This document shows, piece by piece, positions 5,000 to 63,372 of a stretch of 64,000 nucleotides of DNA (position 1 is the first letter of the stretch; each line of letters starts with the position of its first letter). The DNA is from Lepidodermella squamata (Eukaryota; Animalia; Gastrotricha), in contig JBLDXI010000043.1 in the NCBI GenBank assembly GCA_047495785.1, positions 1-64,000 on the forward strand, read 5' to 3'. The notes beneath the pieces are model-generated. The model had not been told where the DNA came from and did no database searches. It saw only the letters and a program-made list of their open reading frames with translations. The position numbers were made by a program, and so were the translations under genes.

Positions 5000-5037
5000 T
5001 ATAAGTGGCTGAGTTCTAATTATTAATATTACCGAAG

Positions 5038-5580
5038 ATGCCCCTAGCTTATTCTAACCAAAACGTTGACAAGTACCAGCAGTTTTTTCTCCGCCAACAC
5101 TCCTCCCCGCTGATAGCAGGCTATGGAGCTGGAGCGGGTGCTAACCTGGACCATTTCCGTGGGGCAACAATTCAATTTCCATATCATTATAGGGGTCAGG
5201 GAATAGGAAATATATTAGGTGCCTTTTTCAGAAATTTCTTCCCAGTAATTGCTCCGTCTATTTTTCAACAAGCATTATCTACTGGCCAAAAAATATTAGG
5301 TGATATGCAACAACCTGAGGGCGCTAGACCTAGTTTTACCGAATCCCTTAAGCGTCATGGCACTTCAGGCGCCTTAAACATGGCTAAGGATATTGCTGAA
5401 ACGGCTTTGAAGCAACATCAAGGCGGTGGAGGTGGCCGTAAAAGGCGCCGTCGTCGTGGCCCTAGTAAAACTAGTAGTGTGACTGCAAAACGTAGGCGCC
5501 GTGCTTCTACTACAAAAAGAAAGGCTTATAAAAGGAAAAGACGCGCAACAACTAAATCAGTGCTATTTGAAGCGTCTTGA
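5038..5580 (+). CDS. PM/core-like basic protein, left-arm copy
   Basis: Identical to 18078-18620. Confidence 0.7.
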   Translation: MPLAYSNQNVDKYQQFFLRQHSSPLIAGYGAGAGANLDHFRGATIQFPYHYRGQGIGNILGAFFRNFFPVIAPSIFQQALSTGQKILGDMQQPEGARPSFTESLKRHGTSGALNMAKDIAETALKQHQGGGGGRKRRRRRGPSKTSSVTAKRRRRASTTKRKAYKRKRRATTKSVLFEAS

Positions 5581-24655: not shown

Positions 24656-24842
24656 AACGGTTATAGTAAAAATGACCGTAGTGCTATTACTGATACAACG
24701 CTCGTATATTTATGCCAAATGGCTATAGTAAAAATCGCCGTACTGCCATTACTGATCCCAAATTGCGTATATTTATACCAAACGGCTATAGTAAAAATCG
24801 CCGTACTGCCATTACTGATCCAAAGTTCCCATCCTTACTACT
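24656..24842. repeat. Maverick terminal region: three ~62-bp subterminal repeats and ACTACT end
   Basis: GGCTATAGTAAAAATCGCCGTACTGCCATTACTGATCC repeated; terminal ACTACT. Confidence 0.85.
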
Positions 24843-25332
24843 TCTGCTGCCACGGCGGTTTGTCGCCCGATCTTCAATCTATGGACCAGATCCGGCGAAT
24901 CAAACGACCATTTGAGATCCCATCGAAAGGCTTGGCCTGCGATCTACTCTGGTCTGACCCTAGCTCTGAAACTCCAGGCTGGCAGCAGAATGATCGTGGG
25001 GTGTCACTAACCTTTGGAGCTGATGTTGTGGCTGAGTTTTTGAATCGTCACGATTTAGATCTGATTTGCCGGGCGCATCAAGTTGTCGAGGATGGTTATG
25101 AATTTTTCGCGCAGCAGAAGTTGGTTACGATTTTTTCGGCACCGAACTACTGCGGCGAGTTTGAAAACTCAGCTGCTGTTTTGTCGGTTGACGAAACGCT
25201 GCTATGTTCATTTCAGGTACTCATTACTTCGTTGTTACAGCTGGAAATTGAATATGAAAATGCTTTGTTTCATTTTAGATTATACGACCTGCTAGGAACC
25301 CTATGTATCAAAGTCAGCGGCCGAACTTGTGA
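24843..25332 (+). pseudogene. Ser/Thr protein phosphatase 1 catalytic subunit, 3' half, interrupted by the Maverick (intron 25217-25278)
   Basis: [47 protein letters not shown]. Confidence 0.93.
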
Positions 25333-26264
25333 CAGATTCGATAATGAATAAAAAGCCAAAGACCTAGCTTTACCACTTCCTGAAATCTGAAACCTGAGTT
25401 ACCCTAGTTTTTTTTAATTTTATCCACTTCTATGCCTGATTAATGACGCCGAAGTTTAGCTCTGGCAGCAGCGAGTTATGTTTTCAAATTCTAACTTTGC
25501 CAAAAGGGGCGTAGCCAGCTGGTTGATTTGGTTGATCAAACAACAATCAAAATGAATACTGAAAAATACCTCATCGGCCAGTTTTCACTAGAATATGGCT
25601 AGAATTGCCTATGACTCGAATAACATGTTTGCAAAATTGCCAAAAATGTTCTCGCTTCACTCTAAATGCTGATATTTCAATATTTCTCATTTCTTATTGA
25701 AAATCGGCACTTGTCGACCTAGGATTTTTCTAGGTGAAATGAAAATGTCACTCTCAGATCCATAACAACAACCAAGATTCGTCCAGAAAAGGCGTTACGG
25801 TCCTAGAACATGAGCGAATTTCAGCACTCTTGTAGGACATGGTGTAATTTACACGGAGATAGGTTTAAACACGCGCCTGAATTCCGCCATGTGTCGGTAT
25901 TTCATCACGTGCATTTTATGCATGAGTGTACAAGGGCGCGATTGCACGATGGAATATAGCCCTCATCCTTTCATGACGAAGACAATAACACGAATCTAAC
26001 TTAATAATTTACCGCCCGTATGGTAAGCCAATCGTCACCTGGCATCACATGGTTATCCCAGATGTTCATTTGCATTACTAGTTGGTGATACCATTTCAGT
26101 GCGCGATATACGTCTTCGCATCAACATCGTTTATTGAATCAGTCGCCTTAAATTCTCCTTGCCGCCCTTCATCAATACGACCAGTGCTGGAGTATCCTGC
26201 TCCAGCTTACTTCATTATCTTCTTTTTCTTCCTCAATACCACTACATCAGACAACCGAATCATA

Positions 26265-29987: not shown

Positions 29988-30313
29988 TTACTCGGTTTCC
30001 TTGTATAGAGCCGTAGCACGCTCGATGAATCAATCGGCTAATATGAGCGAAATGTGATAAAATGAGGTATGAAATTCGATATGAAAGATGTTCCAAACAT
30101 TTCCAAAGTGCGAAGGAATAGATGTTAGATAGGATCTTCATAAACGGTCGTTATGACCATCGCTACCATCTTTGAGAACGCAACATTTGTTCGCAGAGAT
30201 TAACTCTTCTTACAGAAGATTTAATAACCAGACGCATAATATCGCCATAATATTACATACATATGGTAGGCGCAGCGATCCACATTTCGCTTCTTTACGC
30301 GAAAATAACGAAC

Positions 30314-31531
30314 ATGAAGCTTTATTTGGTATCTTTATGCTTCATTTTAGTCCTAATTCTGCTGATCAGCGCCGATGCGAAGAAAAAGCACGGGAAGAAA
30401 CATGGTCGAAAAGCGTCGGCGACGGACGAACAAGAAGCCGGAAGCACGAAGATTAGCAAGAAAGGGAAGGGTGGCAAGAGAGGCAAGACGACAACTTTTG
30501 AGGTAATCGACAGTTCCGAAGAGCTGAAGCAAAATAATGACGATGTCAAGCCTGTCGAAGTCACAACGCCCCTTTCGGAGGCGAAAGAAGACAGCACCGA
30601 TAAGCTGAAGCAAAAGCACGATGCGAAGAAAAAGCACGGGAGGAAACATGGTCGAAAAGCGTCGGCGGCGGACGAACAAGACGGCAGAAGCACGAATATT
30701 GGCAAGAAAGGGAAAGGTGGGAAGGGAGGCAAGGGGGCAACTTTTGAGGTAATCGACAGTTCCGAAGAGCTGAAGCAAAATAATGACGATGTCAAGCCTG
30801 TCGAAGTCACAACGCTCCCTTCGGCGACTAAAGAAGACACTTCCGATAAGCCGAAGCAAAACGATGGCGGCAGAGTGGCTGTCAAGGCTGTCGAAGTTAC
30901 AACGCCCCCACCGGAGGCGGACGAAGACCATCCCTGGTACGTGGTAGACGAAGATGTGGTACATTCTACAATCCATCTTCCTAAAAACACGAAAATTCGG
31001 CCAAATACTTACATATTAAATGCGCCCCGATTGTACGAGGCGTATTTAAAAAGTTACGCTTTGGACGAATTGGCAAAGCAGGCTGGTGTGCATGACAACG
31101 TCAAGTTTGCATTGAGAGCGGTCGCATTCAAAAAGGCAAATGCTGACAGCAAGTCGAATGAAATGCATGTGAACATTTTGGTAGAATCGACTATTGCTGC
31201 TGAACGATGCAGGATCTTTCGGGCGCATATGATCAAACTTTACGATCTTCAGCCTTATCTTGTTGACATAACGAGACATCCTTCGTGTGAGCCTCAGGAA
31301 AACATGCCTGATTTTACAACAGATCCATCCGTGCAACTGCGACAATCTGTTATTGACGATTTGAAGCCAACTTTCTTATTAAAACCCGCTCGCTATCGCT
31401 GTCCAATACGTCGTCCAATACTTCGTCCAATACGTCGTCCAATACTTCGTCCAATACGTCGCCCAATACGTCGTCCAATACTTCGTCCAATACGTCGCCC
31501 AATACGTCGTCCAATACGTCGTTATCATTAG
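30314..31531 (+). CDS. Secreted protein with 2x82-aa Lys/His-rich repeat and C-terminal (R/L)RPI repeat
   Basis: MKLYLVSLCFILVLILLISADA signal peptide; single exon; AATAAA downstream. Confidence 0.8.
   Translation: MKLYLVSLCFILVLILLISADAKKKHGKKHGRKASATDEQEAGSTKISKKGKGGKRGKTTTFEVIDSSEELKQNNDDVKPVEVTTPLSEAKEDSTDKLKQKHDAKKKHGRKHGRKASAADEQDGRSTNIGKKGKGGKGGKGATFEVIDSSEELKQNNDDVKPVEVTTLPSATKEDTSDKPKQNDGGRVAVKAVEVTTPPPEADEDHPWYVVDEDVVHSTIHLPKNTKIRPNTYILNAPRLYEAYLKSYALDELAKQAGVHDNVKFALRAVAFKKANADSKSNEMHVNILVESTIAAERCRIFRAHMIKLYDLQPYLVDITRHPSCEPQENMPDFTTDPSVQLRQSVIDDLKPTFLLKPARYRCPIRRPILRPIRRPILRPIRRPIRRPILRPIRRPIRRPIRRYH
31400..31522 (+). repeat. 12-bp coding tandem repeat (CGTCCAATACKT)
   Basis: About 10 units seen directly. 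Confidence 0.95.
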
Positions 31532-38414: not shown

Positions 38415-40952
38415 TTCGATGCGAAAAAACTACAGGCCATACTGGTCACAAAACACTGACAATATTTGTGAATGAATCACCTTCTTTCAATCATCTGTAT
38501 GAATAAAATTTGTCAATTTTTCACAATGGAACAATTAAGACACCAACGATTTGTTATTGATGGTATTGAATTTATTTTGAATCTTTCCAATCGCGAGGAA
38601 ATTTTAACATGGCTACAGAAGTGCCAGAGAGGCTGCGTACGTCTGAGCTATCGCCGTTTGTCAATAAATTAACTTGTTCATTCTTTCAGTTTCCAGGTAT
38701 GTCAGAAGTCACATGTCTTCGACATATTAAGTTAGTTTTAAGCAAGTAAGCTGATTAAATTAAAAAACGGCTGTAATCACCCAAAAAACAAACTTGAATA
38801 AGCCTTAATCCGACGTATTCAAGCGGTCTGGGGAAGTTTACGACAAGTAAAAATGCCTGCACACAAAATATGAGACTGTTCAAATGCCCCTTTCCAGCAA
38901 TTAGTCGGCGACTCTTTTTATAATATCCATACATTTGATAATTTAGGCAATTTCAACCTTCAAGTTGTTCTTGTGATGAGAAGGAAATCAGTTGTCATGT
39001 AAGCTGGCACAAGCGCCCAATTTTCTCCGCCTGTAGCTTCGGAATGATCTGGAATGTACATAAGATCAAACGAGTCATTGCCCTTGTGGCTGAGAAAAGA
39101 GGTACATACCAGAAGGAAATCACTAGATCTAGATGATAGTTCGCGCGGAGATATAAATGGAAAAATATCCCCGTCCAAAATGGCTCATTTCATGACCTAA
39201 TGTCGATCGAATAAGCTGAATGGCTGGCATCGATCATCGGTCCCAATATTTCATACATACGAAGGGTCAAAGTCCTAGAATCTAACCCAGTTGCTATTTT
39301 AGATCTACCCAAGATCTCATTTTCAAGGGATGGGATGCTGAAACTCGTTCGATCTTGTATCATCTATTACATTACTTTATTACAAAGTGATATGCAAGCT
39401 ATTAGTACGTAAAATAATCTTTGCATAAGGCGTTAACCAATTCCAAGCACCAAATCAGACGGCTGAAATCAGACTTGTTTCTTGTACTTATGAAAGAATG
39501 CGCACATTTTCAGGCCGGAATATGTGCACAGAATACAGACAGGGTGCGTAGTACAAAGGTTGCTGGGGTGTCGCAACACTACAGCCCCAGGACTCTAACC
39601 AAAAAACCACAACGGGAACCCTTTGGTTTCTTCGGCTGGGAGCTAGAAAGCAATACAGTTCCCGGGTCCTACTTCGCACTCTGAATACAGATGAAAAAAG
39701 TGAAACAATGATTTTGAGGATTTTGAGTCCGAAATGATTGTTCTTTTCTGTTAAACAAGAGTTTTCTTGTTATAATGAAGCAATAATATCTTTTTCGCAA
39801 CTGTTCCATCCTCGATCTTCTCGTCTCATTCGGGGAGAAAAATTGATGGAAGAGGATTTAGCTCTCATTCATTTTTAAATAAAGCCTTCTAAATATACAG
39901 AGTAATAATGATGAAATAAATGGTATAGTAGTTTTTGATCTAGCGAGCAAAGTAAGCAAATTTTCAGCAAAAGCAACAAAAAATATGCTGATCCGATTAG
40001 AATAGTTATTTTCTATTTTCCGTTTCTCTACTGGGTCGATATGGTTGACTGCCATCTACCAAACCTACATGCATACATAACGAACTACGAACAGCAGCAA
40101 TCTAACAGCTTTTTGCTCCACTCAGTCAGTTTCTTGTGACGTTCGCCACCCATTATAAATTGTCTAAATTGTACCTTAGAATTCAAAAAGGTGTTTATGC
40201 ATTCTTTAACCTTACAGGAAAACTTTCCATGTCGTTTTTGGCCTCAATCATAAAGGGGAATTTTGCGTGTACGTAAGATGTTCAAAATTTTTACCGGATT
40301 ACGGTATTGCTATTTTTAAGCCAATGAATATCCGAATGGCTGCTCTCTTGTCGAAAACGGAAAATTAATTAGTCCATGTTCTAAATATAAAATAGACTTT
40401 CTGAAATAGATATACTCAATTCACACCGGCTAGTGATCGTACCCTATAAAAAGATTATTATTCCCGAATACAAGGAAGAAAATTCGATGTACATTTGACA
40501 AGGTGTCAGTCGTTTCAGTACATGGAGGAAGGTTTGTCTACCTAAGTTAAAACTCAGTTGCACCTCCTTGAACACGCACAACAGACATGACCCGAATTTT
40601 CATGATAAAGGGCGTGGAAAATAATTGAGTGATGTTATCTTAGACTTAACAGTTCATAAGCAATTGTCCGTTGCAAATTGAGCCTAAGTAAAGCTTTTCG
40701 CCGATTGTATGTTGATTCGCAATGATTTAGAAGGAAGGGTTATTTCCCAGGCAGTTGCTGAGACATTCTGTCCACGGTCTAGTAGGCTGTTTATCCTGCA
40801 TAGGTTGAGCGGAAAAACATTGCCTTAGCAAATTAGCGGGATTGCACACCATGACACTTTTTTTAAGCCCATTCGTTTCCTTTTGGAATTCGAATTAAGT
40901 GATATTCAGCTATAATAATACAAGTTTCATCTCAGCTTAGAATAAAGCCGTT

Positions 40953-41472
40953 ATGCTACTTCGTGAAGTAGTAATTTTGGTATTGTTATCATCCACAATT
41001 ATTCTAGCGACTCAGACGGAAAGCTCGAGAAAATGGATAAAATTCCTGAAAGGTTAGTTTTTCGTTTATGCTTTTGTTCATAATGCCATTCTGATGGTTT
41101 TGAAAGTTCAAAATTGTAGAGGTTTCTTCCATATTTCAACAGCCAAGTTCAACGGCCTAAAAATTTCTCCGCAGACACGAATTTTATTACTAGGCAAACG
41201 TTGAATCGTCAACGACCTAATATATTATTCATCTAACAGGAAGCCTCAAAAAGCAGCTCAAAGCTTTGCTGGGTAGGGTTCCAGACTTCTGGCGAAACCT
41301 GCCGCGGACTGTTCGCGACCGGTTACTTCAGAAGCTTCGTATGGACCACTGCATCGCTGTACTGCACTCTCGAGACGTCTGCCGCGATGAAGGTACTTTC
41401 TACATCTGGGCGAGATCATTTGCCAAGGAGATCATGGCCGGGAAGCACGACAAAGACGTTCTGTCTCGTTAA
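40953..41472 (+). CDS. Secreted cationic helical protein family, copy 2 (intron 41053-41239)
   Basis: Same exon structure and motif. Confidence 0.85.
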
Positions 41473-42567
41473 TTCTGCTCTAGAAAAAACCAAGTTACCT
41501 AAGGTCCGAGTGCATAACAAAAATACTGAAAATCATCGATAAAAGAATGAAAGGTGGTATTCCTGTGTGTAGATTAGCCCCTTCATTGGTCTATCGACGA
41601 AGCGTTTGTACAGAGTTATTCTTTTATGTTTTGTACCGGCGGTGTCTTCCTGAGGTTTCCGCAAAGCGATTAAAATGTCACCTCGATGTATAGTTTATTT
41701 TGTTCAGTTTCATTTTCTATTGTCGCTTCAGCCTTTATTACATTGTTTGCATGCAATTCTGCATCTATACATTCGCGCACCGATAAATCAACACAATAAA
41801 ACGTTTATGCACTAGGATGACCGCTACATGGGCCGGAAGATGATTTCCTCAAAAAATCTGGAGCAATATTATAAGGGCGAAGTCTGATCTCCTCTCTTAA
41901 AACGTTCCTACAAATAAAACGTAGTCACATTCCGAGCCGCGGCAAGCTCAAATGTTTATCAAAAGATTCATGTCTGCAGATTAGCCCCTTCATTGGTCTT
42001 TCTTCCACAGTATCGTAAATTTCGATTATGATGTCGTCGGCGAACATCGGGTTCGCGCTATTCCGCTCTATCGTTTCCTGATCACGATGTCGATATTTTT
42101 CTATCAATATATAACTCACTCGACACCATTTTGATAAATCGGCAAGGTTTTGATAACTCAGCGAACTCAGCGAAATTTGCAAGGCATTCTGATTATTCTA
42201 TCCGAGGCTCTAGCTTAGCACAATATTCGTGAAATTCCGTCAGCTAGGTGACGCTGTCTTTGTTACAGCCGGAACATTTCTCCCCGACAAAATCACCGGA
42301 TACATGAAAAAGACTTATTTAAAACCACGTCGTCTTTATTCTGATATTGCACGAATGATTAAGAACCAATAAATTATAAAAAAAAATGAATTAAGTAATA
42401 AATATTGCGGATCCGTGCGGATGTTTCCATGACGTCAACAATAAGTTCGAATGAGTAATAGAAATTTACAAACAATTTACAAGAACTGGCAATAGGCAAT
42501 CATTTACATGCAAAAAGCATTGAATAAGAGCTTTCACGAGGAATTCGAAAATATTAACGAAGCTAAT

Positions 42568-44412
42568 TCAAGGTTTCTTTGATCTAGGCATTTTTCTTGG
42601 CGATTGTTTGGGTTTTTTCTGAGAACTGAGAAATTCCTTAAATTTCAAGAAAATTTCAGCATGTTCCTGAGGTGAAATAAATTGCTCGTAGATTTGCTCG
42701 GCAACGCCATCGGTGTGGTGGAGGTAGCGGTTGACCTGTTTCTGTTGGGCGGGAGTCAAGCCAGGAATTTGATTGTGGCGAGAACTTGTCTGCATCATGC
42801 GCCTTTGCATTGAAAAGTGATATGATGCGAGACTCGGTCGGGCAGTAGATGGAAGAGTTAGGACGAATTTGTCCCACAAAATACTTGCGTAGTAGGACAA
42901 GCAATCAAACCTCTTGCCATCACTTCGTAGCAGTAAATACTTGGCGCTTTTAGGGTCAGCCGGCTTCGGCCGGAACTTGCGGCGGTATTCGTCGTAGAGT
43001 TCCACAAGTTCCTGGTCCATCGTAACGTAGGGGAAGCACCGCTTACCGTTCTTCGTCTCCAGGACATGAACTGTCCAAGTGCCCGGGATCTCGGAAAATC
43101 GCTTATCGAATTCAGCCTCCTTCATGCCTGCGAGACTCGAAGGGCGGCAGCCATTGAAGGCGTTCATTTTAACAACAATTCTCGCAATTCGAAAGGCATA
43201 CGGCACAATTTGGCCTGCTTTCTCCATCTCGGCGATCGTCTGCGAAATGAATTCAGCGTATTGTGGCGCTAGATGAATAGTGACCTTTTCATCAATTCTT
43301 TCGTGTTTCAGCGCAGCCTGTGCCTTGCCACGTTTAGCATTGCACTGCTTGATCCTCGGGTCAAGGAATCTGGTAATGATGAAATCGATTTTTTCACGCT
43401 CCGATTCGCTAACAAGACGTCTCGGTAAAAGGAAGTTGTCTCGAAACATTTGCAAGAAGTCTTTTAAAGCCATGAATCTCATGTAGAGACTGTGGCACGA
43501 GACTGGCTCTTCCCCACCGCGTAAATTTGTCGTAATCAATCGATCCTCACGAGCCGCGAAATCGAACCATTTGTCAACATTGAGCATATCCTCAACAGTG
43601 AATATGCCTGCCAAATTGAGGATGCCGGTTAGTCCGGAATAACGCGATCGAACAGTTTTAGCATTGCGATCATCTTGCGTTGCTTCCATTTTAAAATCTG
43701 GATCTTTATAATGCTCGAGGGCCGGCTTCAAGCGAGGATCATTGGTGACATATTTTTTACTCAATTTTCTCGTCTTCTTAATTGGGCTTGGAGACAGCGC
43801 GATACGGGTTAATTTCTTTGACAACGTCGCCTCGCCTGATGTCTCTTCGTCAGACGATTCATCGAAATAAGTGTCGTCCAATACGACGCCTTCATTCGAA
43901 GTCTGAACATGTGAAATATTAGATTCGCTCTGCTGCCGAGAGGAGACAGCGCCATCGTCACCGAAATACTCGTTCTCACCCGAACAATTGGACTGATCAA
44001 ATGAGCTGTTGAATGTGAAATCGACTGGATGAGAGACATCAGCATCCATATTCTGAAGAGCAGGTGTAGAGCACGCAACTGGAGCACGGCGTTGGAATTT
44101 CGTGCTCTTCGGGCTTCCGCAAAAAACGCAGTAGCGTTGCAGATGACGATCCTTGCGGTTCCGCTCATTGAAAGGCAAATATGGAGCAAATTTTCCGTTA
44201 CCAGCGCGGGGTCGGCACTTCTTTTTAGCGAAGTGACTTGAAATATTTCCCGAGCAAGTATTCGTTCGGTCAGCAAGGGCATCGTGATATCGAGTCGTTT
44301 CGCTCGTAGTTGCCTGCATCGTTGAGAAATTATCGCTGCTTTCTTCAAATCGATCTTCGGGATCCATCAAGAATAGCGGAAAAGGCAAGTCTCCGAAAAC
44401 AAACTGGGACAT
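42568..44412 (-). CDS. Tyrosine recombinase (614 aa) with disordered N-terminus
   Basis: NGCRPS (Arg), ETKNG (Lys), FSMQRR (HxxR equivalent), LHHT (His), QIY (Tyr) in canonical order. Confidence 0.88.
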   Translation of the reverse strand: MSQFVFGDLPFPLFLMDPEDRFEESSDNFSTMQATTSETTRYHDALADRTNTCSGNISSHFAKKKCRPRAGNGKFAPYLPFNERNRKDRHLQRYCVFCGSPKSTKFQRRAPVACSTPALQNMDADVSHPVDFTFNSSFDQSNCSGENEYFGDDGAVSSRQQSESNISHVQTSNEGVVLDDTYFDESSDEETSGEATLSKKLTRIALSPSPIKKTRKLSKKYVTNDPRLKPALEHYKDPDFKMEATQDDRNAKTVRSRYSGLTGILNLAGIFTVEDMLNVDKWFDFAAREDRLITTNLRGGEEPVSCHSLYMRFMALKDFLQMFRDNFLLPRRLVSESEREKIDFIITRFLDPRIKQCNAKRGKAQAALKHERIDEKVTIHLAPQYAEFISQTIAEMEKAGQIVPYAFRIARIVVKMNAFNGCRPSSLAGMKEAEFDKRFSEIPGTWTVHVLETKNGKRCFPYVTMDQELVELYDEYRRKFRPKPADPKSAKYLLLRSDGKRFDCLSYYASILWDKFVLTLPSTARPSLASYHFSMQRRMMQTSSRHNQIPGLTPAQQKQVNRYLHHTDGVAEQIYEQFISPQEHAEIFLKFKEFLSSQKKPKQSPRKMPRSKKP

Positions 44413-44616
44413 TAATTCTCTAAAATCGACAAAAAAAATCAGACCACATGAATCATTTTGATTAAATTGAGGAAATTTAATGAGCTTACATGTCAGAGCA
44501 TGGAAAAAGAGAAAAGAGCATTGAGTATAACATAGTATAAAATGGGTATAAAAAGCCGCGACACAAAAGCGAATCGAATGTCAAAACACGCAGAGTCACA
44601 ATGCATCAATTTAAAA

Positions 44617-45759
44617 TCAATTCCGTTTCCTGGTTGAAATTCGTCGTCCACAATTTGAGCAACCTGAACAATTACTCGCCTTCAAAATGCCTTGCTTCAT
44701 TATTTCATTGCTAGACTCCATGAGAGGCACAGTCTCTTGAGGAGGCTGATTGGTTGGGGTGAATTGGACTTTTTTGTTTTTTTTGAAGATGTTATGTATA
44801 TGATTGAAAAGAGAAGACGACAAAGTCCATGCAATTCGCGCCAAATAGTAGAAAAATATAAACGATCTCACGCCGAAAGAAATGAATAGAATCAAATAAC
44901 GGATGACGATGGAAACTGTGTAATAATCCAAATAAAAAATGCCTAAAAGTCGACCAAACCAGTAGTACACAACGCTTGTGTAAAAGATTTCAATACCCAA
45001 GTCAAATACTACAGCCAGAAACCCTGACTGAGACTCAAAATAGACGGCTGCGATAAAGCATATTATTTGAGGAACGTAATGAGTCGCAGAAAATACTGAT
45101 TCAAATTCGTAGATTGGGAAAAAATGACAGACTATAAACTGGAAAAATTTATATTTGCTCGCGACGTTAAATACAGTAGAAGCAAGTTCAGCAGCTTTCA
45201 TGCCAAAACTTTTGTAGGCTTCCAAATCAAAAAGCGAATCGGCCAATGAAAGATGTGTACCGTTAGTAGCGAGGTAAGCGCACAAAGGGCTGACCAAACT
45301 GAAAGAAGTTGCCCACGTTCGAATATCTTCTTCGGGTAGAGTCATCACACAAGATATAGTGCTACAGGAATGTCTCACGAAACAAGACATGAGCTTCATC
45401 GTCAACTCATCCCATTTTTCAGTAGGAAGCGGCCACTCGCACATCTTCTCCGCTGAAAGACCAATCTTATAAAAACAAGCAAGTGATAACAATAGAGCCA
45501 TACCAATTTTTGTGAAATTTGCCAAACACTTGTTAGACCCGGTTTGATACGCACGGTAGTATTGAAGACCGCTAGCAACTTCCAATATCTCCGGCTTTCT
45601 CGCAATCGTGGTATCACGCTTCCGCACGATATGACCTTGGTCGTCTCTATTGAGCTTGAAAATGTCAAGCAGAAACTCTCCGCTGGCAGGATAGCCCATC
45701 GAATCCGTAAGGAGCATCAAGTAGACGCAAAGCTGAAAAGCCTTCGGAAGTGAAAACAT
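44617..45759 (-). CDS. GEX1/KAR5/Brambleberry-like membrane protein (probable in-frame 51-nt intron 45453-45503)
   Basis: Signal peptide, six-Cys domain C-x11-C-x18-CF...C..C-x22-C after splicing, ~3 C-terminal TM helices. Confidence 0.62.
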   Translation of the reverse strand: MFSLPKAFQLCVYLMLLTDSMGYPASGEFLLDIFKLNRDDQGHIVRKRDTTIARKPEILEVASGLQYYRAYQTGSNKCLANFTKIGMALLLSLACFYKIGLSAEKMCEWPLPTEKWDELTMKLMSCFVRHSCSTISCVMTLPEEDIRTWATSFSLVSPLCAYLATNGTHLSLADSLFDLEAYKSFGMKAAELASTVFNVASKYKFFQFIVCHFFPIYEFESVFSATHYVPQIICFIAAVYFESQSGFLAVVFDLGIEIFYTSVVYYWFGRLLGIFYLDYYTVSIVIRYLILFISFGVRSFIFFYYLARIAWTLSSSLFNHIHNIFKKNKKVQFTPTNQPPQETVPLMESSNEIMKQGILKASNCSGCSNCGRRISTRKRN

Positions 45760-45985
45760 AAAGTAATAAGAATAAACCTAAAACACAATGAAATTGTAAG
45801 AAACGTTTATTGAGTTCAAGAATATTGAGCATATTAAATATTAAATATCTGTTAACTCTTGATTCACAACGACAAGATTAGCGATTCACCGTCGTAGGAT
45901 GATGATAAGTAATTTGATACAGGCATTTCAAATGTTAATTTGATATAAACGATCCAAGGATAATATTATTCAATTGGAAACAATG

Positions 45986-46183
45986 TCAGTCCATATTGAG
46001 AGCACGGGCAATTACGAATCCGACCAGCACTGCCATGATTAGCGAAAGGGCGTATTGCAAGATAGTCAGTTCGAGTTCGGATCGGCTCAGCTCTGTCGAT
46101 CTAAAGATGGATTGATCTTTGTTAGAGTATGCAAGAATTTCGTGCTTGTTCATCGTAACAGCTAAATATAAAAAAACAAACAT
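45986..46183 (-). CDS. Small membrane protein (65 aa)
   Basis: TAATG stop/start overlap with upstream ORF; C-terminal TM helix. Confidence 0.5.
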   Translation of the reverse strand: MFVFLYLAVTMNKHEILAYSNKDQSIFRSTELSRSELELTILQYALSLIMAVLVGFVIARALNMD

Positions 46184-46524
46184 TAAACTTGAGAGTCAAG
46201 GCGATTGTAGTGCAGTTGCTCGGCATCGTTAGACCGCTTCTTAGATTTGCACCGGAAGCGACGAGAGGCGAAAACAATTGAGGTGACAACAGCCACGAGC
46301 AAGAACAAGGATAGACAAAATATGACTATCTCATATGCCTCCACTGGGCATGGTGCAGTAGAGTTGTTTTGAAGGCTGAAAACTGACGTCGTGGTGTTTT
46401 GAAAAAAAGACTCGGAGTCAGTGGTCTGAGCTGTTGATTGAGTAACTGATTCCGAATCAATGGTATCTACTGAGTCACTGTTAACCCAGCTAAATGGATC
46501 GAAAGGGTTAAACTTGCGGCCCAT
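46183..46524 (-). CDS. Single-pass membrane protein (113 aa), Ser/Thr-rich ectodomain
   Basis: S/T-rich N-term with NxT/S sequons, TM helix, basic stop-transfer. Confidence 0.65.
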   Translation of the reverse strand: MGRKFNPFDPFSWVNSDSVDTIDSESVTQSTAQTTDSESFFQNTTTSVFSLQNNSTAPCPVEAYEIVIFCLSLFLLVAVVTSIVFASRRFRCKSKKRSNDAEQLHYNRLDSQV

Positions 46525-46810
46525 AATGAAGGACTGAAAACTGTAAACTGAAAGAACAGTGTAAAATACAGTAGTGCAGAGCTAAACCAGGTTTAAATTC
46601 AAATGAAACGGGAGCCAACGGTTCCGCAACGGTGCCGCATTGTCTTTATTGTCTTTTGTCTGCTAATGAGTTTTTAATGTTGCTAACGACTCATTTTAAA
46701 TTTTATTCTTGAACAATATCAAAAATTAATATAAAAAATAGTGAGATAAATTTATTTATATTATTTTATTTTAACAATTAATGTAAAATAATATGGCCGC
46801 CGCAGGCGAA

Positions 46811-46892
46811 TGTGTCGAGTGGTGTCGAGTGGTGTCGAATGGTGTCGAGTGGTGTCGAATGGTGTCGAGTGGGTGTCGAATGGGTGTCGAGT
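46811..46892. repeat. Eight ~10-bp subterminal repeats GGTGTCGART
   Basis: Seen directly; unit equals inner part of the element's TIR. Confidence 0.95.
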
Positions 46893-47588
46893 GAGTTACC
46901 ATGTAGTATTCTAAACTAACTTACCGGTGGAGCTATCCACCTTATCAGAAATATGTTGATCGTATGAAATTTCATGGTTATTGAGACACAAAACACAAAG
47001 CGTAAACCGATATTTGAACCGCAGGCCTACACATTGCCGAAGAAAAATCTCACGTTGCATCGATCAATCTCAAAAGATTAGAAAAATCAGAAGAAATTGC
47101 TCATAATCAAGTTCAGGACTCATTTTTTGCATGATTGCAGCATTGCATGATCGAAAGTATAAGTTGAATATAGCGTATAGCGGGGTGGGCGGTGGGCGGC
47201 AGAACGAGAATCGCCAAGAATATAATCTAATGGCGAAAACATTCAAGAAACTTCTTGAATCTTTGCCAAGTCAGTCGCGTAACTAGAGCATCCGTTTTTT
47301 ATGCTCATCCTTCCGCTATCTGATCACTACGTATCGCCTTACAGACGAGACTTAGGAATTTGTGGGCTTCCGTTTTCAAGCCAAATCGTGCTCCTCAAAT
47401 TCTAATTGAGCGCGGATAGACGTCGTTATGCCAAATTAGTTTCCAGCAAAGTGACGGAAAACAGACGTTTGCAATTTAATCTGAAAGAAAGTTACGAGCT
47501 TAGTAATCGTCAACATTTTTTCATTTTAGAAATTCTGAATAATTGATCAACGTATCGGCGCTACACAATCAACTCAAACAAGGCTGAT

Positions 47589-47971
47589 ATGCGGTTTCAC
47601 AGAGTAATTATTGTAGTCCTATTACTTTCCTGTATAATCCAAACTGCTCGGAATGAAGGGTCGAAAAAACTGAAACAAGCCACGAAAGGTTTGTTTTTCA
47701 AGAAGTAGTAAATATCAACTTATTTTCTCTATTTGAAGGAAGCCTCAAACATCAGCTTTTGGCTCTGTTGGGTAAGTCACCAGACTTCTGGCAAAAGCTG
47801 CCGCGAAACCTTCGAATTCGGGCACTGAAGAGGCTTCGCATGGAACATTGCATAGCTGTTCTACAGTCTCGAGATATCTGCCGTAATGAAGGTTCTTTCT
47901 ACGTGTGGGCACGATCTAAGGCAAAGGAAATTATGGCCGGCAAGCACGATAAAGACATCATGTCTCACTAA
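47589..47971 (+). CDS. Secreted cationic helical protein family, copy 3 (intron 47689-47738)
   Basis: Same exon structure and motif. Confidence 0.85.
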
Positions 47972-48858
47972 AGCTAGTTTAGATAATATTCAACTTCTAT
48001 TTTAACAGTTTTCACTTACGCTGTCAGTTATAATTTGGTCAGTTATAAGCGCGCCCATCAACGCTATGCCCACGCCTTTGTCTTGATATATCATTAATAT
48101 AGATATATATTATTTGATGTACTATAGTTGAATTGTTGAATTATTAAATTTTTATATGGAAGGCAAAGGAAAATGCAAGGAAAAAGTTTCGTTTCGTTCG
48201 CCATTTTTGTCTTTTAATAATCATACTGTTTAATTGCAGATTTCTCAGGATTTTTAAGAATGTGCTTCAATGTCTATCAGTCAAGCTTGCTTTCGCAGTT
48301 CTCTAATTATCAGTGCCCTGTGGGGCCAACGAAACTTGGGCACTCTATTTTTCACGAGTTGATAACTTTCCGATTCAATTATTTCAATTTCAGCCCAATT
48401 CAATTCTTAACAGCACAGTCAAACTTCTTGCTAGGAGTGTTTCAAATCAGACTCCAGACTGCAGTTTACAGTCCAAAATCAATCGATCGAAAAGCAATAG
48501 TCCTCATCAAATATTCATTTACATACTTATAATAGAAGCGGATGTTTCCAGGATACAAGAGATTTCGTGCAATAAGTTTGCGCATCAATCGATCGACAAA
48601 AATTAGGCCTTATCAACCATTCATTTACACGAAAGTGGATGTGAATTTTCGTCGCAAATAGTGATGCTATCGATGACTTTTTCGGTTCCTGTTTCGGTTG
48701 CATCGGTTTTTGCCTGATCAAGCTTTATATGAATATGTGTTGCCTCTGTTAGTCTGAGATTCGAAAGACCTCAATCTAACACAATTTTGCGAATGCTTTA
48801 TTTGTATTTATCAAAGCTTTTTAAATATAGAATGCTAGACAATATCAAAAGCTGAATA

Positions 48859-49921: not shown

Positions 49922-51290
49922 ATGTATGACAAAGTCCGATTGTTCCTACTTCATAGAAGGAATTTTCCTAATGCCGATATGCTGCTGTTCGAGTTTGTCA
50001 AGGGCGAAAACGGTCAAAAGCATAAATCAGTTCATCGGCAGCTGCTTCGTGATATCCTTGAGAGTTTGAGTTGCGATGAGCTGTTAGACATTTGCTGCGT
50101 CTATGAGCGAGGCGAAATCTTTCATCCGTGTCCTCTATGGCTTGGAATGGGAAGACGATTTCAGTCGCCCAAAATGCGATGAGCTCGAAGCGTTCGGAAC
50201 GCATTATTCCTATCGCGTGATTGCTTGGATACTTGCACGACTGCACGGAAAACAAGATCACAGCCAAAATTACATCGGTTTTAAAACGAGACTTAGCAGC
50301 AGGAATACGCCATTTCAATCCAACAGAGACAAGCGCAGCTATAGAACTGGCGGCGATACAGGGAGACTTGGATCTATTAGCTTTCATAGTTGAAAAATCA
50401 CTTGGTACCGTTTCTGCTGCAAGCAACTACGGCGAAGCCCTGCTGTTGAATGCGCTGCGAATTGGCAAATCGATGTTGTTCGATTCCTGGCTGAGAAAGC
50501 ACCAGCCATAGTTTCTAGTGATGATAACAACGGAACAACTTGCAATTTGCATAGCCACTGCAAATGGCCACATGGAAATTGTTCAGTTTTTGGCCGCGGA
50601 AGCACCAGCAACCGTATCTACGTCAGATAATGACGAAATAACACCGCTTTGGAACGCCGCTGCCAACGGCCACATCGGCGTTGTTCGGTTCCTGGTTGAG
50701 AAAGTACCAGCAACGGCCTCTACGGCTGATTTCAACGGAGCAACCCCGCTTAGCATAGCCGCTGGAAACGGTCACATTGACATTGTTAGGTTCTTAGCAA
50801 AGGAAGCACCCGCTGATGTTTCTACGGCTGATGACTACGGCATAACCCCTTTTATCCTTAGCCGCTGTTAATGGACACATTGACGTTGTTCGATTCCTGG
50901 CTGAGAAAGCACCAGCCACGGTTTACACGGCTGATAACTATGGCAAAACTCCGTTATGGAATGCCGCTAGGTCCGGACACTTCCAAATTGTCAGGTTCTT
51001 GGCAAAGGAAGCACCAGCAACTGTCTTAACGCCTGATGACGACGAAACAACACCGCTTTGGAATGCCGCTGCGAATGGCCACATTGACGTTGTTCAATTC
51101 CTAGCTGAGAAAGCACCAGCTGATGTTTCTGTTGCAGGGCGGTACAACTACGCTTAGCGCGGCCGCTGCAAATGGCCACATCGACGTTGTTCGGTTCTTG
51201 TTCTTATTCAGTTCTTATTCGGTTCCTAACTTCCAAAGCTCCAGCAACCGTTACTACTTACTACGGTTGATAATTACGGCGCAACTGATG
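49922..51290 (+). pseudogene. Ankyrin-repeat gene, multiply frameshifted
   Basis: Several ~34-aa repeats TPLWNAAANGHIxVVRFLAEKAPA spread over different frames. Confidence 0.8.
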
Positions 51291-52508
51291 TGTAGAACAT
51301 CGAGGTGCACAAGAGAAATGTTCCCGCAATTTTCGGACTATCGACTATATGTAATTCCACTGATTCCATACTTAAAGTATGGAATCAGTGTATCTCAATT
51401 TATTATTCTTGCTATTCTATTATAATTACATAGAGAATTCGAAGCTTCCAAGAATTTTGCATATTGAGTTTTACAAGTATCTAAACCACTAAACGGCGAA
51501 GGTCCTCAATATGGCTAATTGTCTATTTTCCTTCATATGCTTAGTGTCATTATATTGAGAATAAAAACTACGCGCTTCAATTTTCTGAACGTTCTGAATG
51601 CGTGAAAATTTCCGATATTAGAAGAAAATGAAATAATAAAAATCAATTCTGAGCGCCGAATTTTCCGACTACCTTGGACGGTATTTTTCAAGGCAAGTTT
51701 TGATTTTTCTAAGGCCATATTATATTTCTTTCCCATGTTTGTATAGAGCAAATTTTGCTCTAGATCGTTTCCCCCGTTTCTAGTATCGCCTTATAGATGC
51801 GATGGTGGTAGCAGCAACGGTAGCAGCAACGGGCACGCCATTTTGCTATTCGACATTGTGCTATTTTTAAACCAATAATTAATAATTAATGATTAGCTGC
51901 TCTCTTGTCGAAAATTGTTACAATTAGGTAAATTGTCCAAGCTCTCAATTCGTTAAAAAGGCATTTAAAAATAGAAATGCTCATATTACTCTGGCTACTA
52001 GTTTTAACAATACGCTCTATAAAAAGATTATTTTTAATGGAAAAGGCTAAACATGTCGGCGTGAATCGACAAGGTGTCAGTTGTGTCTGTACATGGAAGA
52101 AGGTTTGTCCACCCAAGTTAGAACTCATTTGCACGTTGAACACAGCCATTAGATATGACCCGAAACTTCACGAAAAAACACATGGGAAGTCATCTTCGAC
52201 TTTATAGTTCATAAGCAATTGTCCGTTGCAAATTGAGCCAAATTAACGCTTTTCGCCGATAGTATGTATGTATGTGGATTCCTTAGATTGGGAACGGAGG
52301 GTTTTTCCAGACATCCTGTCCATTGTCTAGAAGGCAGTTTACTCTGCATAGTAACTAGCTTGAGCGGAACAAATATTGCCATCGCAAATTAGCGGGGCTC
52401 CACACCATGACACTTTTTAACGCCCATTCAAAACGTTTGCTTTTGGAATTCCGATAAACTATTCTGATAAACTGTGAAGCTTAAATAAAACCTTTAAATC
52501 AAGCTGTT

Positions 52509-53050
52509 ATGCAACTTCGTGAAGTGGTAATTTTGGTCTTGTTATCATCTACAATCATTCTAGCGACTCAGACAGAAAACTCGAGAAAATGGACGAAGTT
52601 CCTGAAAGGTTTGTCCTTCTTTTTTTTGTTCATAATTCCATTCTGAAGATTTTGAAAGTTCAAAATTGTAGAAGCTATTTCCATGTTTCAAAAATCACAA
52701 GTTATATGACTTCAACTTCAACGGACTAAAAATTTCTCCGCAGACATGAATTTTATGACCAGGCAAACGTTGAATCATCAACGAGCTAAAATCTTTAAAA
52801 TCTTATTCTGCTAACAGGAGGCCTCAAAAAGCAGCTCAAAGCTTTGCTGGGTAGGGTTCCAGACTTCTGGCGAAACCTGCCGCCGACAGTTCGCGACCGG
52901 CTGCTTCAGAAGCTTCGGATGGACCACTGCATTGCTGTACTGCACTCTCGAGACGTCTGTCGCGATGAAGGAACTTTCTACATCTGGGCGAGAGCATTTG
53001 CCAAGGAAATCATGGCCGGGAAGCACGATAAAGATGTTCTGTCTCGCTAA
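52509..53050 (+). CDS. Secreted cationic helical protein family, copy 4
   Basis: Close paralog of copy 2 including flanks. Confidence 0.85.
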
Positions 53051-54706
53051 TTCTGCTCTAGAAAAAACCAAGTTACCCCAGGGTCCGACGTCATACCAAA
53101 AATACTGAAAATCTTCGATAGTATGATGAGAGGTGGTATTCCACCTGGAGATTAGTCACTTCATTGTTTTATCGACGAAATTATTGTATTATTGGCGTAC
53201 CGGCAGTGTCATTCTGTCGTTTTCGCAAAGCGAGTAAAATTTCACCTCGACGTTTGGATTATTTAGTTCTTTTCGTTTATTGCCTTAAGATACATTAACT
53301 TAATTTACAGCTTTAATTACATTGTCTGCATGCAGTTCCGGCGTCTACTTACGTGCACCGATAAATTAGCACAATAAAACGTTTATGCACAAAGATGATC
53401 CCAACAAGGGCCGAAAGATGTTTCCCTCAAGATAATCTGAAGTGATACGTGGGGCCAGTCTTATATTTCTTTAAAAGTACAAATAAAAATGGAGCCGCGA
53501 GTCGCAGTTCGAGTCACGACAAGTTCTTATTCTCGAAAAATGGAGGCCTACATTAGAGCGCCATGAGTAGTTAAGGGATGGATGCAAACGGTTTTTCACA
53601 CGGTGGTCATAGTCAGTATGTTGACAAATGAATTATAAAAAGACAATGAAATGTCGTCCATCTGGCTAGATCGAGCAAAACCTGATCGCGAGGAGACCCT
53701 GAATGATAGCTTGATAGAAGTTGATAGCACGAACGATGGCACACCCAGTCTCCTCTCACCTTTCACCAGTCGTAACGATTGAGCTATTTAGTAGCCACGA
53801 CGAGGAAGGTTATAGGTATGGCGACAGTAAATAAACTGAATGGCGTTTTTAGCAACATAATGATTATCGAGCAATCAAATCCGCAACAATGTGCGCCCTC
53901 AAAATGGCATTTATTGGAACTTCGATTTCAATTGATTTGTAAAATTAGAATAAAATGCATTAAAGCTTAAGGATTCACTTTCAGCATAGCATTATCAAAT
54001 AAGTCTCGGGCTGGGCGGCAGAACAACTTACAATAGAAACACATGCCGTCACTCTCAACTTATTGAATCTTCGCCAAGTCAGTCGCGTAACTACAACGCC
54101 AGTTTTTCCTGTGTATCTATTGCATTGGCCATCTGTTTCTCCTAGCTACATAATATTCATTACAGCTAAGCAAAAGCTAAGTTTAGGGAGAATGATGTAA
54201 AGAAGATTCGATATCTCCTCGAAAATCACCCAAAATAATTTTTGGCCGAGATAAGTGGTCATTATCAAGAGAAAGGGATCACCAGTTGACAGAAAATTCT
54301 AGCAGGGCGATCGCCATTGTTGAAAAGCACAAAATTACCATGTAAAATAGGACATGGTTTCGAAAGAAATGCGCACGCACAAGGAAAACGTGTCAGAAAA
54401 ACGTGGATGCGTACTCGGATAACTGCTTTCTCTATGGCTTCCCTTTCTAGATGAGACTTGAGAACTCGTTGAATTGCAACAAAAGAAATCGTACTCCTAC
54501 TTCCTTATAAGCGCGGATAGACGTAGTTAGTAGTTACCTAATTATTTGTCAGTGCAAATAGTGACGGAAAACAGACAATTGCAATTCAATTTTAAAGTAG
54601 GTTACGTGCATGAGCTGCTGCTCTAAATTGTCTAGATTTCATTTTAGAAATTCCGAATAATTGATCAACTTTTCAGAGCTTCAAAATCAGCTCAAAGAAG
54701 GCTAAT

Positions 54707-55101
54707 ATGCTGTTTCACAAAGTGGTTTTAGTAGTCCTGTTGATTTTCTGTATAATCGTAACGGCTCGCAATGAAGGGTCGAAGAAACTCAAGCATGTCA
54801 TGAAAGGTTTCCCTTTGATTAATAAAAGTAGTAAATATATCCATATTTAACTGTTTTTCTATTCAAAGGAAGCCTTAAACGGCAGCTGTTAGTCCTTTTG
54901 GGAAGATCGCCAGACGTCTGGCAAAAGCTGCTGCGAAAACTTCGAATTCGGATCCTGAAAAAGCTGCGAATGGAACATTGCATCACTGTTCTACAGTCTC
55001 GTGAATTCTGTCGAGATGAAGGTTCTTTCTACGTCTGGGCGAGAGCCATTGCGAAGGAAATTATGGCCGGCAAGCACGATAAAGACATTCTCTCTCGCTG
55101 A
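54707..55101 (+). CDS. Secreted cationic helical protein family, copy 5
   Basis: Close paralog of copy 3. Confidence 0.85.
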
Positions 55102-55477
55102 ATTGGAAAGCAAAACTTTGAGGGCTGACTATTTCTCTTTAATGACGACTTTGATCTCTCATCTTCAAATTTCTGAGTTTTGTAGATCCACAAACCTCAA
55201 AGGTCGGAAAACTCTTAAGTAACATTCTTTTACTTCTGAATGTTCGAACCCCTTAGTCTTATGAAGCAACCATTGCACTCTAATCTCTAATCAGGATTTG
55301 TAGAATTAAACACGAGATCATAGGTAATCGATTTGAGGAGGCGGTTGTTCCTTCATTTGCTTTCCGATCATCATTTCTGCAATTAGCACTTTAAATGCCA
55401 AAAATAGACTGCGAGGTCCGATATTTGGGTCTAATTCCTGGGTCTGTCAAAAAGTCTTTTATTTCGGGTCAACGATG

Positions 55478-61974: not shown

Positions 61975-63372
61975 TTAATCAAGCAAAGGCTTCAGCCCAC
62001 CAACAAGCGATTCATAGCATGGCGGCATTGGCCCATAGTCATACATAACACTGTTGTAGTTCGGTGACATCTCCACAGGCACCGCAACAGGCATAGGCCG
62101 CTCTCCAAGGCCCCAAGCTCCCTCGCCAGTCCATCTTACAGCTTGGACTATTCCTTCCGTCTTCACCTGGTCGAAAACCACATCACCCTGGGGTCGCCTT
62201 GGTATAGTCCCGATAACAACTGGGAGGTACACTTTCAGGTCGAATGATCTAGGAACAATTAGGCCGATTTCTACGTGGTAGTTCACGCAGACTAGTGGTG
62301 AGGAGATTGAAGGAGCTACTGGGGGCAGTTTGAACGGAATCTTCTCCCATTCGGCGACGTTGTCGATTAGGGGCTTAAGTAGCTGAGCTGGTTTGAACGG
62401 CTCCATGGGCGTCATTGGGTAATCCTTAGAAGCAACGTGCTCGGATCCTGTATGAAAGTGGAAAGGTTCTGAATTTTTGCGAATCTAGGGCCTAAATTAG
62501 TCCAACCTCCTTTTTCTCGCATCACTTGGCGCTGGACTAATTTGACGTAGGGCTGAACTCCATGCCGCGAGCGGTTGATCAAAGTACCGCTTACTAGTAC
62601 AATGTCCTCTGCAATACATAAACCGAGTTATTGAGAAAGTATTTCTTCGGAACCAACCTGGGCAATAAGCGGCTCTATCGGTTTGGCCTTCGATTCTCAG
62701 CGGACCTTCGGTGCACAGCCCCCAGCATATCCTCTTCGCATCTTCGGCCAAAACTGGAAACTGGAATTATAGGACTTTGATTAGGGTAAAGCAGAGATCG
62801 CAAATATGATTACGTCGTACTGCATCAAATTGATGTCTATGAGTTGCAGAACTTTGATGGAACTATCCGCTATTTTTATGTCTTCCTCTTCGAAGGGAGA
62901 TGTTGCTTCGAGCCAATATCGAACGTAGCCATGCGGCCCCTCAAATGATGTACTGAGACTTAGGAAAGCAAAATCAACCAAGAAATCAGTAAAAGAAGGT
63001 CTTACTTCGAGGGGAGATGAAATGTGAACGGAATCAGTGAAATTCCATGCGTGATAGCTCCTTTGATCTCGGTTATTGCGAAATAAAAACTCTGAGATGC
63101 AAGTACTTACCATGAGGAATAATGACTTCTTGAGGTAGGCGCAGGAGTTCTTTGGTTTCATGATACGTTATGGTGATGGTTTCGTTAACGCCCCCGCTTT
63201 GGTTTGAGTAGGTCTCAGTCCAATAGACCCGGGACTTTCCGATTAAAGTCACGGTTATGCTCTTTAAAGGTAACTTGCCCTTGGCTATGATTTCACAGTA
63301 GCCATGAAGCAGCTCCCCGGCGTAGTAAAGCGTCTTTTCTTTGATGACAACAGATATCGAGTCCAACGACAT
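61975..63372 (-). CDS. Alpha-arrestin (ARRDC-like), multi-exon
   Basis: YYAGELLHG, GKSRVYWTE, TSFEGPHGYVRY, AYCPG, LPVVIGTIP, PPCY motif. Confidence 0.9.

Follow-up and report, generated by a model that had tools for sequence, protein, structure and literature searches.

The analysed stretch of DNA, positions 1 to 64,000 of contig JBLDXI010000043.1 from the gastrotrich Lepidodermella squamata (hereafter the window, 64 kb in full), holds on its minus strand a gene for a cysteine (Cys)-rich membrane protein, which lies next to the gene for a putative tyrosine recombinase within a compact mobile element. As judged from its sequence, this element is a DNA transposon of 4.8 kb, intact and of a type not described before. 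The Cys-rich domain is, with good probability, homologous to the domain of GEX1-type proteins, on the strength of the sequence comparisons set out below, whereas the whole protein is not a regular member of the GEX1/KAR5/Brambleberry family. A preliminary description of this DNA had called the protein GEX1/KAR5/Brambleberry-like: the similarity of the domain (from profiles, shuffles and spacing) is upheld, as is the order of leader, Cys-rich domain and C-terminal membrane helices, but full membership is not, given the lack of a Pfam Tht1 match, the lack of a coiled coil and the larger membrane domain. With regard to function, analogy with the family suggests that the protein may promote or hijack nuclear-membrane fusion from the endoplasmic reticulum (ER) or nuclear envelope and so aid the presumed excised circle of the element, a reading that is preferred here but held tentatively, at somewhat less than even probability.

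Exhaustive searching of 1.84 billion representative proteins with phmmer returned a single relative of the Cys-rich protein, P0001 (E 1.4e-18), and a profile search added a second, P0002/P0003; these are the sole relatives across the 1.84 billion representative and 5.8 billion clustered proteins. The family as analysed consists of three sequences: the window protein, P0001, which is partial, and P0002. The loci of P0001 and P0002 (L001-L008) derive from environmental (metagenome) assemblies, among which L003-L008 represent one locus with 99.4-99.8% identity and L001/L002 represent a second element with ~68% nucleotide identity to the first. The window protein exhibits 29-31% protein identity with its metagenome relatives. 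No further relatives were recovered in two scans of metagenome_contigs and two scans of viral_contigs, and no second copy of the gene was found in the window by tblastn. A word-index protein search with the open reading frame (ORF) and with the recombinase gave no matches, PDB sequences gave none with single-sequence or profile queries, and PHROGs and NCBIfam gave none either.

The gene lies in a minus-strand ORF at 44617-45759, which runs without interruption from end to end and encodes 380 amino acids (aa). A candidate intron of 51 nucleotides (nt) with the borders GTATGG..TTTCAG is of phase 1, in frame and free of stops, and splicing it out places the Cys residues at positions 78, 90, 109, 115, 120 and 143 in the pattern K-C-x11-C-x18-C-F-x4-C-x4-C-x22-C-A-Y-L. 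The ORF, the intron and the Cys pattern had all been reported beforehand and are present as written, and the splice is matched by P0002, the Cys-rich domain of which is encoded without an intron and reads C-x11-C-x18-C-x11-C-x6-C-x23-C; the unspliced window sequence gives x28 instead of x18. Because intron-free P0002 carries the same spacing uninterrupted, removal of intron 1 is required, and homology thus supports intron 1 as probably genuine. Introns in the host are very short (46-51 nt), and the related genes carry 46-nt GT..AG introns. L003 possesses its own 46-nt intron farther upstream, with an exon 1 that encodes a predicted signal peptide and an RSKR site, and the recombinase gene of L002 possesses a 46-nt GTCAGT..TTACAG intron, the removal of which yields HVQETKNGK, compared with HVLETKNGK in the window.

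The 44617-45759 ORF apparently lacks a C-terminal membrane helix, with which both homologues finish. A second candidate intron (GTAATT..AACCAG) is 46 nt long, equal to the length of three introns of the related elements, and its removal would join the frame to the terminal membrane helix present in the homologues, and a three-exon model was adopted for this reason. The gene most probably continues through intron 2 into a last exon in another frame, ends at 44493 and encodes 389 aa. The extent first given for the gene therefore holds for the ORF, while the gene itself probably runs on beyond 44617 by way of the 46-nt intron. In the second metagenome element, the contigs are identical from L001:254 on and unrelated upstream (L001:1-380 against L002:1-257), and the Cys-rich gene of both starts right after an intron acceptor inside the domain, the exon for the leader, Cys1 and Cys2 not being recognisable in the available sequence. 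This 5' gap could mean that the copy is truncated at its 5' end, that the element ends here or that the exon lies far away.

Proteins of the GEX1/KAR5/Brambleberry family act in nuclear-membrane fusion and karyomere fusion and share one build: a signal peptide is followed by a Cys-rich domain in which six Cys are invariant, then by between one and three coiled coils and, at the C-terminus, by two or three membrane helices; only the Cys-rich domain is conserved in sequence across the family (PMC4291462, PMC7586128, PMC10609895). The spacing of the domain in land-plant GEX1 is C-x11-C-x19-CF-x11-C-x8-C-x22-C (PMC7586128, supplement alignment), in agreement with the plant pattern that had been given earlier (C-x11-C-x19-CF...C...C-x22-C), and Cys56 and Cys68 of Kar5 are likewise x11 apart (PMC4291462). 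The element family exhibits the spacing C-x11-C-x18-C-x(5-11)-C-x(4-6)-C-x(22-23)-C, compared with intervals of x11, x19, x12, x8 and x22 in plants. P0002 falls within 0-2 residues of plant GEX1 at all five intervals, and the third and fourth intervals of the window protein are shorter. Each of the six Cys is kept in both the window protein and the L003 protein, and the four Cys covered by the partial P0001 are conserved too.

A set of GEX1 domains was assembled from the five printed rows with self-consistent lengths (Brassica, Medicago, rice, Marchantia and Physcomitrium), the Arabidopsis row being omitted for a letter lost in machine reading, and 510 stop-to-stop ORF segments from the window and the loci served as decoys. 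Since the Cys pattern was already known when the GEX1 hypothesis was chosen, reliance was placed on shuffles with the Cys fixed and on decoy ranking. Alignment of the element family with GEX1 by hhalign gave P 6.8e-4 with L003 as master and P 1.1e-4 (probability 56%) with the window copy as master; none of 400 column shuffles of the family alignment reached the observed score, and one of 400 did so with the Cys columns fixed. When the GEX1 profile was run on the 510 decoy segments, the top four places were all taken by members of the element family (E 0.0035-0.05). In the opposite direction, the family profile was run on decoys and GEX1 domains together (515 sequences) and matched Marchantia at 22.5 bits (E 2.7e-6), Physcomitrium at 22.1 bits, Brassica at E 0.0065 and Medicago at E 0.049, with the best decoy at E 0.12. 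Shuffled Marchantia and Physcomitrium domains never reached the score, whether free (0/5,000) or with fixed Cys (0/5,000), and the maximum of the null was 12-14.6 bits. The aligned stretch, of ~62 residues, begins with the helix that precedes Cys3 and ends shortly past Cys6; similarity between Cys2 and Cys3 is modest (p 0.03), and the signal increased once two more GEX1 sequences had joined the profile.

Several observations weigh against the nuclear-fusion reading at the level of the domain. The GEX1 profile is based on five plant sequences from machine-read supplement text; the window's own spliced protein ranks only eighth against it, with a non-significant E of 0.79; the signal comes mainly from the metagenome members and from the Cys3-Cys6 half; and the Cys1-Cys2 segment is alike in spacing and not in residues (p 0.54). 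Pfam Tht1 (PF04163) was not matched, and neither the ORF nor its exons, P0001, P0002 or P0003 returned any Pfam family at E<=10; nor was any GEX1, Kar5 or Bmb protein among the results of the exhaustive phmmer search. A profile match to the GEX1/Kar5/Bmb Cys-rich domain was thus obtained for the family against plant GEX1 and was not obtained for the window copy by itself or for Pfam Tht1. An AlphaFold model of P0002:26-322 from a 3-row alignment reached a predicted local distance difference test (pLDDT) score of only 38, too low for a meaningful comparison of folds. The missing Tht1 match, the lack of any known protein in the whole-database searches, the non-significance of the window copy, the brevity of the similar stretch and the choice of hypothesis after sight of the Cys pattern would all suit a convergent look-alike, that is, a helical, disulphide-rich domain of separate origin in a membrane protein that has nothing to do with the fusion of nuclei. 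Such convergence is nevertheless improbable in view of the Cys-fixed shuffles by both methods, the growth of the signal with added GEX1 sequences, the reciprocal ranking of the family and GEX1 profiles and the close agreement of P0002 with plant spacing at every interval.

Outside the domain, the protein begins with an N-terminal hydrophobic leader by inspection and hydropathy (residues ~1-22 in the window protein and 1-19 in L003, Kyte-Doolittle hydropathy 1.83). A dibasic site follows ~25-30 residues after the leader in both full-length members, as RKR in the window and RSKR in L003, and a conserved N-x-S/T sequon stands just after Cys6. Given the leader and the conserved sequon after Cys6, the six-Cys domain is predicted to face the ER or perinuclear lumen or the extracellular side. 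The C-terminal membrane domain is the best-conserved part of the protein, with the conserved motifs FFPxYExE, HYxP, FESQxGF and DYYTxxIVxRYL, and is followed by a basic loop; hydropathy gives 4-6 hydrophobic helices in place of the three or so first counted. Between Cys6 and the first hydrophobic helix there is a stretch of only about 45-60 residues. The coiled coil, which had been described as shortened, is in fact a missing region, with only ~45 residues between the domain and the first membrane helix of the window protein.

In L001, L002 and L003/L004, the Cys-rich gene is followed after 78-107 nt by a homologue of the window recombinase gene. Nonsynonymous divergence (dN) between the elements is 0.27-0.79. 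Synonymous divergence (dS) has reached saturation in the L001/L003 and window/L003 comparisons and stands at 4.0 between the window and L001, for which dN/dS is ~0.2. Because dN lies far below dS, the Cys-rich gene is under selection, and a chance ORF is ruled out. These comparisons indicate that the gene is selected together with the recombinase and so does something for the element. The preliminary description had treated the gene as cargo; since linkage to the recombinase is kept in three independent loci of a compact 4.8-kb element, it is instead a conserved core gene, and the same linkage rules out a captured host gene or chance neighbour.

The bounds of the element could be set because it is inserted into one copy of a repeated host unit. 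This unit is present in at least six partial copies (40308-41997, 47193-47972, 51859-53571 and 54012-55102, and also at 38154 and 56814) with 60-93% identity and no ORF of at least 90 aa. It is collinear on both sides of the element, where 40308-41997 matches 51859-53571 and 47193-47972 matches 54012-55102, and the comparison of flanks leaves an insertion of ~4.75 kb between 41998 and 47192. The 16-mer TAACTCACTCGACACC occurs exactly twice in the window, once per strand, against 0.01 expected, and extends imperfectly to 23 nt. The element is assigned a length of 4,787 base pairs (bp) because two independent lines, the paralogous flanks and the inverted repeats inside the gap, converge on it. 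The tandem 10-nt copies at one end (Table 1) are likely to be extra binding sites for the recombinase, as judged from their position in the terminal repeat. Joined ends would form a 32-bp perfect palindrome of two inverted arms with a short AT-rich centre, which resembles the layout of a lox/FRT-type recombinase core site and may serve as one. In the L003 and L004 composite no terminal inverted repeats were found, and tandem arrays stand at both ends: 40-nt units x3 at the head (L003:1-123) and 53-nt units x13 at the tail (L004:~4520-5136). The two arrays have only the 9-nt word CAGTTCTGA in common and represent either element ends or host satellite.

Four closely spaced minus-strand genes are held within the element: ORF-a, ORF-b, the Cys-rich gene and the recombinase gene. 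A T-rich tract that ends in AG stands 6-25 nt before each of the four ORFs (TTTTCAG, TATTTAG, GTTTTAG and GATTTTAG, at 46525-46570, 46154-46200, 45760-45800 and 44413-44460), and the intergenic gaps measure only 30-230 nt. This layout resembles that of a polycistronic unit whose transcript is resolved by the kind of trans-splicing found in nematodes or rotifers.

The 614-aa protein is taken as a very divergent tyrosine recombinase. Its catalytic candidates stand in canonical order and spacing, namely R423 (NGCRPSS), K454/457 (ETKNGK), R537/538 (MQRR), H565/566 and, nine residues later, Y575 (LHHT...IYEQ), and are conserved in the L001, L002 and L003 homologues; the His of HxxR is not conserved. 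The spacing of these residues presumably agrees with that of XerD. No profile match was obtained in Pfam, NCBIfam, PHROGs or PDB sequences. An AlphaFold model has a pLDDT of 50, and the best Foldseek hit, XerA, is not significant at E 0.24, nor are Tn1549 integrase and XerH, which were also listed. In the N-terminal part of the protein, a RHLxxxCxFCG motif (residues ~89-100; window 44100-44140) is conserved in the L002 and L003 homologues, with further His and Cys after it in the metagenome copies, and may be a zinc-finger-like DNA-binding module. Directly behind the 46-nt intron of the recombinase gene, a single-base difference in an A-run separates L001 (~2690) from L002 (~2570), as a consequence of which only one keeps the frame after splicing and the other is open unspliced.

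The two small ORFs upstream of the Cys-rich gene each encode one membrane helix. ORF-a exhibits a weak, sub-threshold match to Pfam TMEM154 (E 2.2e-5), and its counterpart in L003 also has TMEM154 on top (E 0.074); a small single-helix ORF at the position of ORF-b is also present in L003/L004. ORF-a and ORF-b are similar to their L003/L004 counterparts in build and position and show no sequence similarity to them, and homology of these ORFs between elements was rejected on that ground.

By the preferred reading, the recombinase would presumably excise the element as a circle, and the Cys-rich protein would sit in the ER/nuclear-envelope membrane system with its GEX1-type domain in the lumen. 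The domain would there promote, or hijack, fusion of nuclear membranes, and the excised, centromere-less circle would in this way regain, or cross to, a nucleus, much as Brambleberry fuses karyomeres. A fuller version holds that the transposon family encodes a karyogamy-type nuclear-envelope protein of its own, with a GEX1/KAR5/Brambleberry-derived domain, and fuses nuclear membranes for its own benefit, whether to bring the circle back into the nucleus, to move it between the nuclei of a syncytial germ line or to bias pronuclear fusion; this version is doubtful. Beyond the domain-level points given above, the short distance from domain to first helix leaves no room for the coiled coils that the GEX1/KAR5 family needs for fusion, and the membrane domain is here the best-conserved part, whereas in Kar5 only the Cys-rich domain is conserved. 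The identity of the recombinase, which would make the circle, is read solely from the order and spacing of motifs. The conserved dibasic site, together with the mucin-like partner ORF, suggests Golgi traffic, a poor fit to a resident of the nuclear envelope.

The dibasic site is of furin/kexin type, and its presence in both full-length members agrees with the main rival explanation, in which the three membrane proteins go to the cell surface or to vesicles as an envelope-like transmission module, the element passes from cell to cell or host to host, and the GEX1-type domain is an adhesion or fusion fold borrowed for use outside the nucleus. The conserved order of small membrane ORFs upstream, the conserved glycosylation sequon and the precedent of a transposon-borne fusogen (10.1101/2022.07.12.499685) agree with it as well, and the extreme rarity and patchiness of the family in 15 billion proteins would suit horizontal spread. 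Yet the 4.8 kb of the element contain no capsid, packaging or replication gene, the small ORFs lack sequence conservation between elements, nothing ties a naked recombinase-made circle to vesicles, and the sole significant similarity is to a nuclear-envelope protein family, which together leave surface transmission unlikely.

The retention of the domain without coiled coils, and membrane helices with invariant charged or polar residues (FESQxGF, DYYT, RYL) beyond what an anchor needs, favour a further explanation. The protein could interfere with host karyogamy, as a dominant-negative or decoy of host GEX1/Bmb that biases nuclear fusion or transmission, or could be another selfish membrane effector of channel or toxin type, for example as one partner, with the small membrane ORFs, in a toxin-antidote pair. 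In plants, loss of GEX1 is reported to block nuclear fusion and to cause haploid induction (PMC12205866, PMC13763932). This explanation is quite unlikely: the gene has stayed tightly linked to the recombinase while the proteins diverged by ~70%, which points to a function in the cycle of the element itself and away from a dispensable effector. Nuclear-membrane fusion on behalf of the excised circle is kept as the preferred reading, at the tentative strength given at the outset.

A literature search found no paper that ties Kar5/GEX1-type proteins to mobile elements, in keeping with the earlier remark that no case of an element with a karyogamy-type protein had been described. As a DNA transposon that combines a putative tyrosine recombinase, perfect inverted ends and a constant set of genes for membrane proteins, the element matches none of the described eukaryotic types (Crypton, DIRS/Ngaro or Starship). 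To our knowledge, the biochemical role of the GEX1/KAR5/Brambleberry domain in nuclear-membrane fusion is not yet known, and the GEX1-type domain occurs here in a minimal, fast-evolving and selfish setting without coiled coils. If the protein acts at the nuclear envelope, the element would be the first to manipulate nuclear fusion or nuclear re-entry and would offer a compact natural variant in which to study the function of the Cys-rich domain; should the protein act at the cell surface instead, the domain would prove reusable as an envelope-type module.

Table 1. Positions of the mobile element, its ends and its genes in the window.
Feature	Position	Strand	Remarks
Whole mobile element	42112..46898	-	4,787 bp; all genes on minus strand; bounded by paralogous flanks and inverted repeats
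Terminal inverted repeat TAACTCACTCGACACC	42112..42127	+	perfect 16 bp; 3' end of element as transcribed
Terminal inverted repeat, other arm	46883..46898	-	perfect 16 bp; 5' end of element as transcribed
Tandem 10-nt array x8 (GTGTCGAGTG / GTGTCGAATG)	46812..46893	.	inner part of terminal repeat; Tandem Repeats Finder score 125-139
ORF-a	46183..46524	-	113 aa; Ser/Thr-rich stretch, one membrane helix, basic tail
ORF-b	45986..46153	-	55 aa from ATG; small, one membrane helix
Cys-rich gene, exon 1	45504..45759	-	predicted signal peptide, RKR dibasic site, Cys1
Cys-rich gene, intron 1	45453..45503	-	51 nt, GTATGG..TTTCAG; removal restores C-x11-C of intron-free P0002
Cys-rich gene, exon 2	44676..45452	-	Cys2-Cys6, N-glycosylation sequon, membrane domain with conserved motifs
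Six-Cys domain	45280..45528	-	Cys78 to Cys143 of spliced protein; span includes intron 1
Cys-rich gene, intron 2 (probable)	44630..44675	-	46 nt, GTAATT..AACCAG
Cys-rich gene, exon 3 (probable)	44493..44629	-	C-terminal membrane helix, TGA stop
Putative divergent tyrosine-recombinase gene	42568..44412	-	614 aa, intron-free; 80 nt after probable stop at 44493

Scans of the window found no tRNA gene and no Rfam match, and eight of its proteins, looked up as exact sequences, were absent from a collection of 15 billion proteins. A near-perfect palindrome of ~23.6 kb occupies 18-23640, with arms that are 100% complementary in long blocks and a centre near 11.8 kb, and contains LTR-retrotransposon-like ORFs, one of which (2471-3589) matches an integrase core and a chromodomain; the palindrome may be a genuine foldback or may have arisen as an artefact of long-read assembly. 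Host-like gene fragments lie at 24719-25351 and 61975-63372, where one ORF matches calcineurin-like phosphoesterase (Pfam Metallophos, E 5.5e-15) and others are arrestin-like, as judged by eye only. A low-complexity ORF of 422 codons (30263-31531) encloses a tandem duplication of 243-246 nt that is 91% identical (30373-30861), and seven tandem repeats of 102-103 nt (34 aa) with an ankyrin-like AANGHIDVVRFLAEKAPA motif (50453-51154) apparently belong to a host repeat-protein gene.

Among known systems, the GEX1/KAR5(Tht1)/Brambleberry family resembles the present protein in its six-Cys lumenal domain, with intervals of x11 and x18-19, then CF (CV in the L003 variant) and x22-23 before the last Cys, in its N-terminal signal peptide, here predicted, and in its C-terminal membrane helices and basic cytosolic or nucleoplasmic stretch. 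The present protein differs in being encoded by an element and in its length of 367-389 aa, compared with about 500-600, and possesses 4-6 helices with strongly conserved polar motifs, whereas the family has 2-3 poorly conserved anchors. It also lacks the coiled-coil region and a Pfam Tht1 match, carries a dibasic site upstream of the domain and has shorter Cys3-Cys4 and Cys4-Cys5 loops, most markedly in the window copy.

Cryptons are tyrosine-recombinase transposons of fungi, oomycetes and animals that have only 4-6-bp direct repeats and no terminal inverted repeats or long repeats (PMC3212892). Like the present element, they are DNA elements of a few kb with a tyrosine recombinase as the sole enzyme, spliceosomal introns and a presumed excised circle, and some carry one extra protein gene. 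The present element, however, has perfect 16-bp inverted ends, a subterminal 10-nt array and three membrane-protein genes, and its recombinase matches neither the Crypton-derived Pfam model (DUF3504) nor Phage_integrase. DIRS-type retrotransposons are likewise eukaryotic and possess a tyrosine recombinase and inverted terminal repeats; a DIRS-type retroelement is ruled out, as the 4.8 kb contain no reverse transcriptase, RNase H or methyltransferase ORF and no internal complementary region was found in them.

Errantiviruses carry env genes. For a fusion protein carried by a transposon, the closest precedent is the fusogen of nematode Mavericks (10.1101/2022.07.12.499685). In these systems, as here, a selfish element has retained a gene for a membrane glycoprotein to serve its own spread, but theirs are viral-type cell-entry fusogens in capsid-bearing elements, whereas the present element has no capsid gene and its protein bears a likeness to a cellular nuclear-envelope family.

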